A DNA stretch of 63,861 nucleotides, the filler included, from Choristocarpus tenellus KU-1152 (lineage: Eukaryota; Protista; Phaeophyceae): assembly GCA_964200185.2 (NCBI GenBank). It is 13 parts of 13 records of this genome, joined end to end, with 100 filler letters (N's around TTAATTAATTAA, not from the genome) between each part and the next. Parts side by side here need not be neighbours in the genome. Positions count along the whole stretch, not along the records: positions 27,062 to 32,689 come from CAXNAD020010197.1; positions 32,790 to 36,841 come from CAXNAD020016465.1; 11 more parts are not named here. The stretch is one strand, 5' to 3'. Positions 2,884-33,162 of the stretch are shown here, piece after piece. The notes beneath the pieces are model-generated. The model ran no database searches, was not told the origin of the DNA, and saw only the letters and a program-made list of their open reading frames with translations. The position numbers and the translations under genes are program-made. Position 1 is the stretch's first letter, and each line of letters begins with the position of its first letter.

Positions 2884-4200
2884 AATCCTCCCCCCCTCAC
2901 CTGGTTTGACTTATCCGTTGAGAAGTGGAGTGGATGTTAAGGCTAAGATGGGGCAAACTAATTAATCCAGAAATCCCGAGCAAAGCAAAAAGTCTATAGC
3001 CGAGTTTTCTCTTTTGTTAACCCATGATTGTAGAGGATCTCTCACAATGATATTGGCGTACCTATAGAGCTCTGGGGTGCCTAAGATACATATACCTGCT
3101 AATCTGTCGCAGAATAGAGGTAGGATGTGGTGTCATTGCTCTGGTGACGTGTGTGTGCTGTTCATCGATCTTCATGTGTTTGACCACTACACTGCCCCAA
3201 CACAACTCATCATGCATCTAGTGGGTAAAAGTTTGACCTACTCAATTCATTTTCGACTGCGGACAGTAGACATACCGTCTCATATACCCAGAAACGATTA
3301 CAGCAACAAGGTTTACATAATTTTATGAATAACTTCAACGATTGTGTCCTGGTTCCTCAGTGTGGAAACACCATTACATTATTCAAGTGTCCGACTGAAG
3401 GGGTAATTGAAGTTTTTTTTTCCCATTCCTTTCCTTTGATTTCAAATATATATATATGATAATGGGCACAACCATGACTAAGGTGCCTTCTGATAGGTAG
3501 GCAGGTGCTTAGCCCAACAAATCTGTGGGAGTATAGAGGTATACAGGAGGACTTTACCACTACTTGTAGTTGGAGTGGGAACATGGTTGTTCAAAACTGG
3601 TAGACTGTTGATGCAGACTCTTGACGCGAGCACTGCACTCCCAGATACTTGGATCCCTCGACCAGAATGCATCTATTCTATTGCTGAGAAGTATGCAGGT
3701 TTCTCAGCCCCACAGGAACATCCATGCAGTACAGTACAGTGCTTGTCATTTGTGCCACAGTGAGGACCAAGAGCATGTCCTTCTATGAACAAAGACAGCC
3801 CCCACCATTTCCACATTCCTCCAGAGCAGTGCATATCATACTTTATTGTAACAATCAAGCCTAACAAACCCAAATACACCCACCCACCATTAGCACAAGC
3901 ACCATAGCTGGGAGGAGACCGCTGAATAGGTAGTTACCCATGTCAGGAATCTGCCAAAACAATTTCAGGTAAGTGCCCGTATAAGACCTCAACCATCTGT
4001 CCTTATTGATCACTACTGTTGTTAACTCTATCCTTCTTGCTTCCACTCAGTCAGCTGTTCGGTCACTTCCATCCATCCCCAAAGAGTACCCTTTTGCAAT
4101 TGGAGGGAGACGCCATTCACATTTTGAATAGTTGGTTGGAGGGGCCTCCTGTAGTTGAGGTGCAAAACGTTGCCTGACTGGAAGTGTTCTTTCTCCACCC
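2884..4200 (-). mobile_element. Degenerate Ty1/Copia RT-RNaseH relic with polypurine tract
   Basis: Frameshifted motifs in Copia order on the minus strand: IAKGYS (~LVAKGYSQ), SPPSYG..LGLLGL (~LPPG..LYGL), LYCMD (~YVDD), GSKYLG, QYH.VRD (~HIDVQYHFVRD). They are followed by the PPT-like GGTGAGGGGGGAGGATTG at ~2884-2902. Confidence 0.5.
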
Positions 4201-8412: not shown

Positions 8413-10429
8413 TGAGTTCTAGCACCAGACTGTTCTCTGAATAGGGTGGTTGTGGGGGAGTGAGGGGTTGAGTTTTCAGCAATCCCAGTGATTAGTGCTG
8501 TGGTGTCTCATCCCCTTCACAATGATTCACCAATAGTATAAAGTGAAGTGCCAGCCTATTGTTCTGTTGAATCCATTGTTGCGCTCAATTTTTCATCTTC
8601 TGTTTGGGTAGCATTGAACACATTTCAAGATGTCATTTGTAACATTGAATTCAGCCTAAGGTGCCTCATATTATTATTGAGGCCCAAAGGATATATTTTT
8701 TGGAGATGCTATGTCACTAATGACAACTGACTGCCAACACCCCCTCCCTCCGCGCCATTTGCTCCTGCAGGATGACTCCCTATCAGTGGCTAGCGCCACT
8801 TCTGGGATTAAGCTGCACAGCTGGTGGGTGCTTGTTCTTGGTGCCCTTGTGTCTAGAGATGCCATGATCCTCCCAATTCGCCCCTGGGGGTAGGAACTAC
8901 TTAGTAGCAGAACAATTTCAGTTGATGGAGGTACTGCTTTGGCCTTTCCCTCCAATAGTTTCCCCACTCTCCTTTTTTGAGAAAAGGAGATCGTGGTGCC
9001 GCAGCCCAAATAGCTGTGATGCAATGTTCCTTGCACCTTGTTGCAAGTGAAACATCATTGCGCCCAACCACAACCTAATGTTGTGCGGCTAACCCTCCAC
9101 ACTGCAGCCTCCTTGTCTCACAGGGTGCCATGCCAATGTTGTTCAATTGCAGCCATTCAGCACGATGTACAAGAGTGTACCAATGCTTCTTGAGACTGAG
9201 AGTGAGACAGTGTGGAACTACTTCAGTATGACCTTGTGGCACCTCACACTGACCAAGACCTCCATCACCTGTTGAGGTGAGACTGAGCACTCCTTGTATT
9301 GAATGCAGATTAGGAGGAAAGAAAGGGCCTATGGACACTACTTGCACAAAGTATCCATAGTACGAGGCAGCTTTTCTGACACGTTTTTTTGGGACTGAAG
9401 ATGGTCGATTCTTACATGTACCCTAATCATTTTGGCTGTAGTGGGCAAACTGCCCCGGAGATTGGATCCTGTATGAGGTTGTGGAGACTGTTGTAGGGTG
9501 GACAGGAGTGATTATCTTGACATTGATGTCTGTGATGTGGTGCAAGTCATAGGGTTGAGAAGCAAAGAAGCAACTCGTGTCACTTCTCAAATTATCACAG
9601 TACTAAAATGCTTAGTGCAAAAAGGTCCATTTTGACACCATTTTCAACATGTACCTGATTCTGAAGTGCTTAGTATAATTTTTCAACTCGGTGTTGAAAC
9701 CTTTGTTGTAACAGTCTGTTCTCCGGAGCATATGTCAATGATGATTTGGCAGTTCAAGGCAAAAACTCTCTTAAATGGATTGTTGTCTTGTAAAGGGAGG
9801 GTTAGTCCAACGCAATAAAGCACTTACTCTTTACAATGTAATTAATCAGGTGGTGTCGTCTAGTAAGAACCTTGGTTGGTGATAGCAATAAAGCATGATT
9901 CAATGATGATGTGATGGATTAAACCTGGTCTACTGGGAAGGAGTTTGTTACCTTGTATGAAGGAAGGTATATGATATTTAACTCTGAATATGTATCATCC
10001 TGATGCGTTCAAGTACACATAAAAAGCAAAGGGAACTCAAGGGAGCAAGCTGCGAGTCTGCTCTGTTCTCTAAGGCATTCTCAAACACGGAAGCGGCTGC
10101 CATATCTATGAAAGGATGAACCAAATCGTATCTGTCTAGACACAACTATGATGTGTCACAACTGGTGACATTTACATCTGACGACATTGCTTTGTGTGGG
10201 ATTCAGAAACAGGGAACATCAGCAGAGACAGGTGTACTGCACAAATCTGTGCGTGCACTGTGTTGCTGTATATTTCAGGTGTTGAAGTCTCGGTATATGA
10301 CAGTCATGGTCTGAATGAACATGATTGTGAGGTAGTACCATCACAACCTTGAGAAGATCCTCATCTGCAACTATAAGACAACTGAAGCAACCTATTTTCC
10401 AATACCATTCAAACCGTAAAACTCTCTAT

Positions 10430-26961: not shown

Positions 26962-27960
26962 NNNNNNNNNNNNNNNNNNNNNNNNNNNNNNNNNNNNNNN
27001 NNNNNTTAATTAATTAANNNNNNNNNNNNNNNNNNNNNNNNNNNNNNNNNNNNNNNNNNNNACCCAAAAATCATGACATGAAAAAATTGACCCCAAATGG
27101 ACAGCCGCCACACACCCCAGATACTTTGAGTCTATCCGTTCATCTGAACCATCACTGTGACATATAAATATGTGTATTACTTGTAACAAATATATATAGA
27201 AAAGAAATATATATCACCATCCACAAACCTTCAGCTGTAGCCACCGTGAAGTTGTGTTTCTGTTTAACCCACCCCTAGCATATTTTTTATTATCAATGAA
27301 ATCAAATAGGGAAAAAGTCACCAACTGAATGCAGGCAACCAAGACATCCCTGACGTCTTTTTTTATTTCGATCAAAAATAATGTATTAAAGGAAGGTAAG
27401 CCCTCCACCCTGACCTTATCCCTTCTTGATTGTATGTTTTGTTGTACTTATATACTAGAGAAGTAAGAAAACAAACCACATAAAGCCAGCTCTGCCCTGA
27501 AGTTACCTCTTTCGCTTAACCCAGTCAGAGTTAGACTTCACCAAAAAAAAATTTCATCCCAACGAAAAGACAAGTGAGATAATGGGGTACAAGGATACAA
27601 TAATCCCAGAACCAAAATGTCAAGTCCACCAAAAATATGAGGAACTCTATCGGTTCCATGTTTCCCTTTCCACCCACAAGAGACTGCTGTATTGAGAATG
27701 CTGCGTTTGATCAGAATTTTATCAGAGTGGGTACTCGTTTACTGTTCTCCTGTAGTGCCTGGCTGTGTCGTAGTATTGTTAACATGGCATGGCTACTGTC
27801 CTTTGAACATGGGTAAGATGTGATTATCTAGTCTTGTATTCTCATTTCCTTAGTCAACTCAATCATCTGATGCAATACCATTATACTTTTAGAATACACC
27901 ACAACAAGATTGTGTTTGGCCATGAGACATTTGTGTAACACTGTACTTAACTGTTCACAT

Positions 27961-28032
27961 GTACTCTTCCGGTGAAGCTGGGAAACCTCAGTGCTCTCAT
28001 AAACCTGTCCCTTCCCGACAACCAGCTCACCA
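27961..28032 (+). pseudogene. 72-nt LRR exon cassette with mutated acceptor (CAT instead of CAG)
   Basis: Encodes (G)TLPVKLGNLSALINLSLPDNQLT, a 24-aa plant-specific-type LRR. The donor GTGAGT is intact; the upstream TTCACAT replaces TTCTCAG of the paralogous cassette. Confidence 0.8.
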
Positions 28033-31000
28033 GTGAGTGTTTTGTTGCTTGATTTTCCCTACTTCGTAGAAAGAATGCTGTGCGGTGAATACAAATTCCA
28101 TCTTGAATAGTACTTTGATTCTCTGGTTGATGTGAACATTCAGAATGCTGTGTGGTGAGTCTATCAAATATTACCCTGCTTGATAGAGAGAATGTCCTGT
28201 GAGGAATAACAATTCCATAGTGGATGGTATTTTGACTATCTGGTTGATGTGAATATCCAGTAGTAGTGTTTAGCTTTTCAAATGTCACCTCTTAAGTAAT
28301 TAATCTAAATTGCAGTGTAGCCACCAATAGTACAGTCTCAGCGGAGATATTTCTGGGAAAAATTGTTGGCTGATGGTTTTGCCGTTGAGAATAAAAATCA
28401 GCACATGTTTCTACCGAAAGAAACAGTAGGAATCCCTGCTCAAGATACTGAACTGATAGTTAGGTCTGAAGCGTTACTTTTAACCTAAACCACCTTTTTT
28501 AACCTTTCCTCTTTTTACTTCTATACAATGTTGTACATACATATAGAAAACAAAAATGACCCGGAGAACTAAAGAATGGAAAAAAAATGAGCAAGTACCA
28601 ACAACCAGGCCTACCCAAAACTAACTCATGTTTTCTTTTTTTATATACAAATGCACAGAAACATCTAAAACATTTCAGTACTATCGTAACCTGATCCATC
28701 CTATACAGCTATCCACAAAACTATGACATAAAATTGGTACAGCCACAGCATGAAACAAAATGGAGAACCGTGAAATAAACATTCACAACGATCCAGCTCT
28801 CTACCTTGAACTTAACTGTTTGTTGATTTGCCTGTTCTTTTAATCTTTTGATAAATGTAATAAATATCAAAGAATGACAAAAATGAAAATAAAAGAAAAC
28901 CGACATTTTCACCAACACATATTTTTACCTATCCCATATACCAAGCCAAACCGGTAAAAAATGTGCTACTGGTAAACAAAAAAACTAAAGGAATTGTTGA
29001 ACACCGACCACAAGAAGGTACATGTACCCTCCTTAGCTTGACCCCCTTTTTTTGTGCACCTGTAGTTTGAATATTCAAAAATATAGTATAAAATAGAGTA
29101 ACTGGAACTATTTTTAGCTAAAAAGTAACCATGTGTAGCCAGCTTGACACTAAGCTTTTTTCATTTGATAATTAAAAAAAAAAAGTAAGTCTGTGTTTTA
29201 ACCCTACCCCATATAAGATTGCTCACTAGCAGAACAGAAGAAGAAAGTGATTATTTCTACACTGGACGTATCTCTTCCCAATCCTTCGACCTTTCTGTGA
29301 CATGGAAAGACACAAATAGGATAAAATTAGGAAAAAAAAAGATAACCGAAAATGATGAGCCAGTTCGATCATCTCAGACTCTTCTCTTTCATCAACACTG
29401 TAGCTTCTTTTTTTTCCACGTCTACCAAACCCCTAACCCTAAAATTGTACTTTTAGCTAGAGAGAAGAGTAAAAGGCTGAAAATATAAATGAAATATAAC
29501 ACAAGAGGTCAATTGTACCCTTCCCTTGACTATGTTTTCTATATGCACCCAATTTGAATTCTTGGAAGAAATTGTAGTCCAAAACATAGATGGACACAAT
29601 TCCAACTAAAAGGAGGGAATATATGGCATCAACCTCACATCGCCTCTCCCCTCCCCCGACTGAAAATCTAATCTCTTGTTTTATGTCTGTTTTTTTTCTT
29701 TTCCCTTTAGTTTTTCCCTTTAGTTCAGTCAGATGTGTTCAAAAATATGTGCATGTTCTGAATTAATAGTGTTAAGAGTTTTCGACATGGAGAGTTGGAT
29801 TTGCTTTATTTGAATGACTCGAATCAAGTGGAGAAGAGTTAAGGACTTATTTGCAAAGTACCAAACTAAATCACTTTGAAACAAGTACCTTATTACTTAA
29901 TCAACGTCACACTCTCATGTGGGGGTACTCTACACATATTTTTTTGTTCATCCTATTATGGGCATTTTTGCCATGTCTACCTAGTATAGTAGCTTCTATG
30001 GAGGGTCCTCCATAATTGGACATTTTATAGATATACTTAGGTGTTGCTGGGTAGATAACGACATTGGTAGCTATTGCCAGACTCCTCACCTACAAGTTCC
30101 TCTCCCTGTCCACCTCTCCTTTTTCCCCTCTCCCCAATACAAGAGGAGTCGACAAAAATCGTAGAAAAAAGATAGGACTGGGAATAAGAGCCATATTTTC
30201 TCCTTTTTTTTTAGACTGTCGCTCGCCACACGCGATTTTCAAGTTTGTGCTGCACGACCGACGTAGCCATGCTCCTCTGTACAACAGAACATTACTAATA
30301 GAATCGAACTTTGTAAGACGTCCATCACGATGGCACAATAATGGTTGGTGTCAAACTTTTCATGAATAGTCTACGATAGAGAAGGCTAGTGTTCTGATCG
30401 CAAGTATTCCTAGACTTTTATCCTGGGGATTTTTATTAACTGTTTTCGATGTGTTTCGCTTACATATCACAGAATTAAAAAAAATTGTCAAAGAAATTCC
30501 CGATGGAATATGGCGGGGAACCTTCAAGGCCTTCTTTGCAGCAACCGCACCTCAATCGTGTGCGTGGTTGCGGTGATAAGTGCCACTGAAAATGGGCAAC
30601 TCCAGGAAGACGTGTAGTCAAGTCAACCAGGGGGCAGTGCGCGAAAGAGATGCCAGATGACTAATGGGAACAACGAAGGCTACAAGGATAAGCATGGTAC
30701 CACCAGCGCAGGCAAAGCACTTGTGGTTCAAGACTGTAGATGAACGACGGAGAAGGGTTCTGCCACTATTGTGTCTGCTGTACTTGAAGTAAAGTGGGCG
30801 ACTGCTGATGCAGAGACTATGGTCACAAAACAACAAACCGATACGTAGATTGAATCGAGGCACGTTAAAGCAGAGGTGGAGGGCAAAGTGGAGCAAGCCT
30901 TCACCATGATGGAGACCACTGTGACGGGGAAGGGATAAAAGGCGCCAGAGAATACTGCGACTACAGTGCTTGGTGAGGAAGACGAGAGACGATAGAGGCT

Positions 31001-32417
31001 AAGCTGCTGAGAACCGTGAGGGTCATATTCGTGCTGAAGTAGCCAAATGTGTTGTCAACACTCTGAGACGCCAGCATTGCCTGAAGAAGAGATTGCAATG
31101 TTTGTGGGCGGAGCTCTGAAAGTAAAGGGAGGAACACGAAAGGAAAAAGAACAAGGTTGACATCTCCGGAAAGACCTGGAGTCTTTTGACCCAAACCATG
31201 TTCTACCTGCAATTGAGATTGAGCAAACAGAGGTTGTTGTGACTCTTGAGGAGGAGAGGCAGTACCACGAGGGGATCGGAGGTCCACTTTTTCCCAAATC
31301 CGGTTACCATCTTGTCAATAAACGAGCAGGAAGGATACAATTGTGCATGGATGGCTAAGTACAGTGTGCGTAGAACATACCCCAGATGCACGAGTAGCAT
31401 CTCAGGATCCACCTGCTCGGTGCTCTCCATGTTTGCTTTGTCGTTTGTTTTGGCCTTTTGCCAGCTATAACACCCTAGATGCGTTCACGTTTCCTGAATT
31501 GCCAACCTTACTACAATTTATCTCGCCCTTTTTTGTTTTCGAAAGTTTAAAAAGTAGGGACAAGGATGGGGGGGGATTGCTGTCAATTTGATTGGTCAAA
31601 CAACTATCAAAACACTGAAACCTCGATATGAGATAGTCGAAAACAAGCCTCCACAAAACGGCAACAAATGGCTCTCACTCCCAGGCGTATCGACAGTATA
31701 AACGTGAAAGAATATTCACCAAAAAATTCCCTTCCTACTCCAAACTTGCCTCATTTATGGATTCCATATATTCTTCAATTCTCTCGAATTTTGTGAGTTC
31801 CATTATTTTATTATTATTATATCCTCTGACATTTTACATTCTTACATTTCGAAAAACCGATTAAATATCAGAACCCCTAAAAGAGTAACAGTTGGCGTAA
31901 ATATGAAAGACATTTTTCTATCATCCAATTTACTATTTTACTACCAGCTATGCTACACCGCTGCCCTCCTGTGCCTCCAACCTAGCTTAGTCCTGCAGAG
32001 TCTATTTATTTTCTACAAATATATTATGCCCCTATTTACCAACCTGCTCACTTTATTTTTGATAAGAGTGTTCTACGCCAACAAATAGTTTTTTTTTTTT
32101 ACCAGCTCTACTAATTGATTGGTTTGTTATACAACATACATTAAAATAAAAAACGCAGAACAGCGGCCACACCCCTGAATATCTATTCTCTTGTAACTTA
32201 ACCTTTTCTTAATGATCCATCTGTTTTTTCTCAAAGTTTGGCTAGCATGACAAGAGTGTGGTATACCATACATAATTTGTTCTCTTGTTTTGTATTCTAC
32301 CTTGCCTTAGTCAACTCAATCATCTGATGCAATACCATTATACTTTTAGAATATACCACAACAAGATTGTGTTTGACCATGTGACATCTGTGTAACATTG
32401 TACTTGTCTGTTCTCAG

Positions 32418-32489
32418 GTACTATACCGGTGGAGCTCGGCAACCTTGGTGCGCTGAGAGAACTATTCCTCTACAACAACCAGCTCAACC
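32418..32489 (+). CDS. 72-nt LRR exon (one 24-aa repeat; ROCO/LRR-protein type), partial gene
   Basis: TTCTCAG|GT ACT ATA CCG GTG GAG CTC GGC AAC CTT...CAG CTC AAC C|GTGAGT gives (G)TIPVELGNLGALRELFLYNNQLN. It is a symmetric phase-1 exon of exactly 72 nt. Confidence 0.88.
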
Positions 32490-33162
32490 GTGAGTGTTTT
32501 GTTGCTTGATTTTCCCTACTTCGTAGAAAGAATGCTGTGCGGTGAATACAAATTCCATCTTGAATAGTACTTTGATTCTCTGGTTGATACGAACATTCAG
32601 AATGTTGTGTGGTGAGTCCATCAAATGTCACCTCTTAGGTAATACATGTGAGTTGTATAAATATTAGGGTCAAAGTATCTGGGGGGGGGNNNNNNNNNNN
32701 NNNNNNNNNNNNNNNNNNNNNNNNNNNNNNNNNTTAATTAATTAANNNNNNNNNNNNNNNNNNNNNNNNNNNNNNNNNNNNNNNNNNNNCCTACCCAAAA
32801 CATAACCCCTTACGTTGAGGAAGGAGAAGGTGTTAAATTATCATATGATAGGACAGGATTGAAGTACAAGCTATGTGCAGTAAGGGGGGGGGGGGGTAAA
32901 GATGATGCAAGTGCAGCAGAGGCGTACGAGACGTTGATAGGGGCATGTGGCGTTGGATGAGGCTCGGGGACAGGCCACAGCGATTTTTGCATACCACATG
33001 TGTCAAAGCATAAATGCTGGTGCAGTTTGAGTTGACATGTTGAAATACATACTCAAGCTCTTAAGGACAGATGCAAGGCATTAGGTTTATAGGAAAATGC
33101 CTCCTTTGAGAACACCTGCCAAAGCCAGTGCCTTCACAGAGACACAAGACACACAGACACTA

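Follow-up and report, generated by a model that had tools for sequence, protein, structure and literature searches.

How two exons that encode leucine-rich repeats (LRRs) came to differ far more than the introns surrounding them is the question raised by a short piece of the genome of Choristocarpus tenellus KU-1152 (assembly GCA_964200185.2). The window, by which we mean the whole stretch of DNA analysed, comprises 63,861 nt, filler included; the piece in question (positions 27062–32689) comes from CAXNAD020010197.1, and its units, patches and exons described below lie on the plus strand. According to blastn and local alignment, the piece contains one long direct repeat (27823–28176 and 32280–32632; 88% identity over 353 nt), in which each copy is an intron–exon–intron unit. 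The earlier note on this DNA offered either an exchange of old exons into standardized frames or a homogenization of the frames by conversion, and compared the system with the variable lymphocyte receptors (VLR) of lampreys. Our analysis retains the conversion, which fits best, and finds no support for the exon-exact swap into standard frames or for the VLR analogy. The most likely agent is gene conversion of the ordinary kind, not a machinery dedicated to swapping exons.

Identity and state of the two exons

Exon 1 (27961–28032, peptide TLPVKLGNLSALINLSLPDNQLT) and exon 2 (32418–32489, peptide TIPVELGNLGALRELFLYNNQLN) are separated by an offset of 4457 nt. Both are symmetric exons of 72 nt with 23 codons at nt 3–71, contain the motif GxxPxxLxxxxxLxxLxLxxNxLx and are directly followed by GTGAGT. 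In length, phase and motif they agree, as had been suggested, with the type I architecture of Ectocarpus, in which one 72-nt exon encodes each LRR of the brown-algal ROCO GTPases and LRR-only genes, with codons at nt 3–71 and the pattern GxxPxxLxxLxxLxxLxLxxNxL (PMC3341825; PMC11378527). The GC3 of the exons (0.70) falls among the values of eight intact algal exons used for comparison (0.61–0.74). The peptide of exon 2 gave a weak LRR_1 match (E 0.01) and resembles the 24-residue plant-type LRRs, including those of known structures. The only species-named match among the short relatives was Ectocarpus sp. 12, in an alignment led by a 48-aa fragment; the exon peptide also resembles plant and bacterial LRRs. 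The top matches inspected from a large protein search had a bacterial look, with no clearly algal one among them, and a protein search with P0267 returned only P0267 itself. Scans with junction and flank patterns produced one chance bacterial match (L001) and none in the viral and genome collections. No ROC-COR or other domain and no further LRR exon was found in the piece, which ends 200 nt past exon 2. The best reading of these features is that the exons are type I LRR exons that belong to, or adjoin, an LRR gene of the ROCO or LRR-only kind; we infer this host group and gene, and the exons are presumably of brown-algal origin and expressed.

The two exons differ in their state. In exon 2, both the CAG acceptor and the GTGAGT donor are intact. 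The acceptor of exon 1 reads CAT in place of CAG and thus offers no AG, a loss that the earlier note had overlooked; exon 1 is therefore probably inactive, as far as its sequence indicates. Inactivated exons lacking a splice site form a class already described in the LRR domains of Ectocarpus (PMC3341825). All eight intact exons of the comparison read AG|...G|GT, whereas the last base is A in exon 1 and C in exon 2. Hence the split junction Gly is not encoded (the junction codon of exon 2 gives Arg), and without the final G even exon 2 is atypical.

The comparison exons, which share this length and phase, were taken from a contig of Ectocarpus sp. 12 (L002) and from CALKLP010000342.1 (L004), the latter found by a broader acceptor pattern. 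L004 (4061 nt) is filed in a Verrucomicrobiales MAG and consists of eukaryotic, brown-alga-like DNA, which is likely due to host contamination of the bin. On its minus strand lie six type I LRR exons bordered by AG/GT sites; a degenerate inverted exon at ~3876–3980 is 73% like the exon at 2210–2315. In L002, the region just upstream of an annotated gene fragment of Ectocarpus sp. 12 contains a type I LRR exon (9805–9876) that is missing from the annotation and has an in-frame stop.

A mosaic of young patches and older sequence

The mismatch counts reported previously for exons and flanks were all reproduced: the exons differ at 20/72 nt, the downstream flanks at 0/99 nt (28033–28131) and 4/137 nt overall, and the upstream flanks at 9/113 nt. 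By Fisher's test, the mismatch rate of the exon exceeds that of the downstream (p = 2e-7) and upstream (p = 7e-4) flanks, and none of 1000 permutations reached the observed clustering of differences in a central tract. Fourteen codons specify the same amino acid in both exons, and seven of them (7/14) differ synonymously. Five of the nine replacements fall at repeat positions 13, 14, 16, 18 and 19, which bears out the reported concentration in the xxLxLxx part. All four of the concave-face sites positively selected in ROCO LRRs (14, 16, 18 and 19; PMC11378527) differ between the exons (p ~0.014).

Over 17.8 synonymous sites, the exons show 8 differences (pS 0.45, interval 0.22–0.70; dS ~0.68), with pN 0.21 and dN/dS ~0.37. 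At the 2.4% divergence of the distal flanks, this number of synonymous differences has a probability of 4e-9. The exons are thus far older than their immediate frames, as proposed before, and they must have diverged for a long time as working exons under purifying selection. It is hardly credible that this pair arose by recent duplication with positive selection, decay or exon-targeted hypermutation as the only later force. The decay of exon 1 and the changes at known hypervariable sites would fit such a history, but the synonymous divergence and a dN/dS below 1 refute selection or decay in a fresh duplicate as the sole cause; the earlier view that positive selection alone is insufficient was right.

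The divergent tract does not follow the exon exactly. Along unit 1, the mismatches amount to 1/71 in the upstream patch (27848–27918; 0/49 at 27848–27896), 8/42 in the proximal intron with its polypyrimidine tract and lost acceptor (27919–27960), 20/72 in the exon, and 0/99 followed by 4/38 in the downstream patch (unit A, 28033–28169), which opens with the GTGAGT donor. The corresponding patches of unit 2 lie at 32305–32375 and 32490–32626. Since 8 of the 9 upstream mismatches are crowded into the 42 nt adjoining the exon (19% of these sites), the tract extends into the intron. The proximal intron differs from the distal one (19% vs. 2.4%, p = 2e-4, with the boundary chosen after the fact) and does not differ from the exon (19% vs. 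28%, p = 0.37). Part of its divergence may stem from the decay of the exon 1 acceptor. The best-fit tract starts at 27912–27957, which is 4–49 nt inside the upstream intron, and ends at 28015–28039. Its 3' edge fits the donor site at the exon end, while its 5' edge lies inside the intron. A model in which the tract is exon-exact was 4.6 log-likelihood units worse, and with the intronic 5' boundary this speaks against the exon-exact exchange put forward earlier.

Homology continues beyond the patches. The upstream margin is alike at 20/30 positions, which is weakly significant (9/500 shuffles), and the downstream tail at 83% over 35 nt (0/500 shuffles). Similarity along the pair therefore alternates between old and new: a margin of 20/30, then 1/71 mismatches, 28/114, 0/99, and the 83% tail. 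In copy 1, ~117 nt of the downstream flank are duplicated in tandem (28054–28312), with units A and B being 76% alike; unit B, the older tandem copy (28171–28312), has an end that matches the tail of copy 2. This duplication is absent from copy 2 (32280–32655 with the tail included), whose downstream flank begins as unit A and ends as unit B. The switch from A to B is a separate trace of unequal recombination.

The two units are very probably real and distinct. Contigs from two samples, X1 and X2, cover the piece at single-copy depth, with one difference in ~5 kb of long pieces among the matches listed; position 28432 is G in X1 and A in X2 and in the assembled stretch, so the samples are nearly, not fully, identical. 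An assembly artefact, in which both units received one flank from a repeat that was collapsed or wrongly polished, is very improbable. It could be invoked because no contig among those listed spans the whole piece and because the two units are joined across a high-copy repeat at ~31875–31997. Yet one X1 contig ends at 27877 and another at 32334, in both cases exactly 30 nt inside the 49-nt block that the units share. A further X1 contig opens on the first base of the 99-nt block (28033), and an X2 contig starts 30 nt before this block ends, marking a branch at its far end; an X2 contig likewise ends 30 nt into the upstream patch of unit 1. If the read graph was built from 31-letter words (k-1 = 30), as we assume, these two entries and two exits mean that the identical blocks exist twice. 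The spacer between the units also has single-copy depth. The identity of the flanks is thus very unlikely to be that of a collapsed repeat. The units are not alleles joined in tandem either, since their outer sequences are unrelated.

Several repeats surround the units. The ends of the piece (27062–27134 and 32660–32689) are the ends of a very high-copy element, the left one at thousands of times the single-copy depth; the terminal repeat includes a run of G8/C8, and both bodies lie outside the piece. This element resembles a PIF/Harbinger-type MITE, and it is probably the reason why the contig ends there. A Pack-transposon was rejected, because the inverted repeats that close the piece on either side are parts of these elements. 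The short repeat at 31875–31997 reaches hundreds of times the single-copy depth, and contigs break across it. A GC-rich (~50%), purine-skewed, decayed coding-like stretch at 30260–31470 is present in ~5–20 copies at ~80% identity; it had no Pfam match and is probably a transposon remnant. A 13-nt tandem repeat (2.1 copies) occupies 29699–29725.

Probable conversion among members of an old family

The pair has relatives. Other single-copy contigs match flank and exon at 78–82%, differing by 18–22% overall and at no fewer than 8 of ~54 flank sites (15% or more); at 5 of 8 diagnostic flank sites they carry the letter of unit B. The identical flank is consequently private to this pair. In X1, at least seven contigs cover the acceptor region, with a summed depth of ~11x single copy. 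The intron–exon–intron units thus appear, from their sequences, to form an old low-copy family that is ~20–25% diverged. The exons of L002 and L004 differ pairwise at 23–36 of 72 nt, the pair studied here being somewhat closer at 20. No shared intron flanks were found between the exons of these two arrays, in which the best flank score among the eight exons was 25, compared with 83–120 for our pair. The frames, once described as standardized, are therefore not standard.

These observations bear on two mechanisms that would treat the frames as functional elements. A programmed, possibly somatic system placing LRR exons into standard frames, as in lamprey VLR, is very unlikely here. The strong contrast between exon and flanks and the 3' boundary at the exon end would suit it, and somatic recombination has been proposed by Zambounis et al. 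(PMC3341825). Nevertheless, the frames are standard neither in the family nor among the compared algal exons, the 5' boundary lies inside an intron, no inverted signal was seen, and X1 and X2 hold the same flank pieces; Teng et al. (PMC11378527) reported no somatic recombinants or recombinase, and no dedicated deaminase has been reported in brown algae either. Equally improbable is a Dscam-like arrangement, in which purifying selection would hold the flanks alike as docking or selector sites for splicing control, even though ROCO LRR exons are alternatively spliced (PMC11378527): other copies differ by at least 15% in the same flank, and an identity of 99/99 exceeds what selection on splice elements gives. 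Within the piece, neither flank pairing nor a stable fold rose above shuffled sequences (z 0.48), which weakens both proposals, and there was no Rfam match, a further point against the Dscam-like one.

We favour gene conversion, with a probability of about 0.6. Old paralogous LRR units would have been homogenized in patches by interlocus (ectopic) gene conversion that spared the acceptor and the exon. The old family of intron–exon–intron units would first have diverged by ~20–25%; later, conversion between neighbours 4.5 kb apart would have overwritten the distal intron on both sides, while the core, consisting of the branch and acceptor region and the exon, escaped. We infer conversion as the cause, as well as its direction and the role of selection. 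Conversion of the core may have been selected against, either because it erased a distinct binding face or because it transferred the defective acceptor from exon 1 to exon 2; alternatively, repair tracts may have stalled at a core that was already divergent. Since exon 1 seems dead, selection for its diversity must be past. Intra- and intergenic recombination is documented in the LRR domains of Ectocarpus (PMC3341825).

Several points count against the conversion reading: it requires two patches or one broken tract, the 3' boundary (28015–28039) agrees with the exon end, the old upstream margin is weakly significant, exon 1 seems dead, and some of the divergence of the proximal intron may be acceptor decay. 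A replacement of the core, by contrast, would be a single event after homogenization. In that scenario, which is possible but not probable, the units were near-identical over ~320 nt, through duplication or one long conversion, and the acceptor region and exon of one copy were then replaced by a conversion tract of 70–115 nt from a third, older member. The core divergence of 25–28% is near the 18–22% of the other family copies, donors exist among the contigs covering the acceptor region, and intergenic LRR exchange has been described in Ectocarpus (PMC3341825). On the other side, no donor was identified, and the old homology outside the identical patches implies that the units were already paralogues before they were homogenized. 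Conversion with a spared core and replacement of the core differ only in the order of events. If the core was replaced, the pair records a real exon swap by ordinary homologous recombination, with the shared frames as homology arms.

Comparison with known systems and significance

This pattern is also known from the human red/green opsin pair, in which exon 5 forms a divergence peak under intronic gene conversion (reviewed in PMC3924837). There, too, the introns of tandem paralogues are homogenized and the exon stays divergent, linked synonymous sites included; here, near-identical patches likewise lie within older homology (weak at the upstream margin) and divergence peaks over the exon. The opsins, however, are whole-gene duplicates with known selected sites, whereas our pair consists of repeat exons of one domain. 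In the LRR genes of the ciliate Tetrahymena, one exon encodes each LRR, and ectopic recombination or conversion has multiplied and reshuffled the intron–exon units; these genes differ in their 90-nt exons, thousands of genes and a link to retrotransposons. Lamprey VLR share with the present family the LRR modules and a reservoir of related copies. VLR assembly is somatic and lymphocyte-specific, building an intronless gene through homology inside the LRR modules with the help of cytidine deaminases. None of these features of somatic assembly was shown for our pair. The "segment switch" of snake three-finger toxins (ASSET; PMC2474615) resembles our pair in that introns are >85% alike whereas segments of the exons differ strongly; it concerns sub-exon segments of unrelated proteins, and its mechanism was left open.

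Among brown-algal type I exons, inactivated copies without a splice site, variation at positions 14, 16, 18 and 19 and signs of recombination are all matched here. The pair departs from the type I arrays in its AT-rich introns (~35–40% GC), in the spacing of its exons (4.4 kb vs. ~110–600 nt in L002 and L004) and in its homologous intron frames, L002 and L004 sharing no flanks. In a term search of Zambounis et al. (2012; PMC3341825) and Teng et al. (2024; PMC11378527), no statement was found that flanks are more alike than exons, and neither "gene conversion" nor "flank" occurs as a word in either paper. This detail may be unreported for brown-algal LRR genes.

How LRR exons are shuffled in brown algae has been debated since 2012, when somatic recombination was proposed, alternative splicing being the simpler account offered later. 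Because the introns flanking the two paralogous exons align here, breakpoints can be mapped, which is impossible in the Ectocarpus-type arrays compared. One pair with one dead exon is, taken alone, ordinary paralogue mosaicism, a known kind of pattern. The pair nevertheless points to homology-driven conversion, with the exon either spared or swapped, and gives a clue to how repeats are reshuffled in the candidate immune receptors of seaweeds. A bolder extension, which we consider unlikely, is that recurrently converted frames act as homology arms, so that acceptor-plus-LRR cores are often exchanged among about a dozen units, toggling exons and altering binding faces, possibly in the course of vegetative growth. 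If true, such core exchange would supply the mechanism that accounts of LRR exon shuffling in brown algae have lacked.
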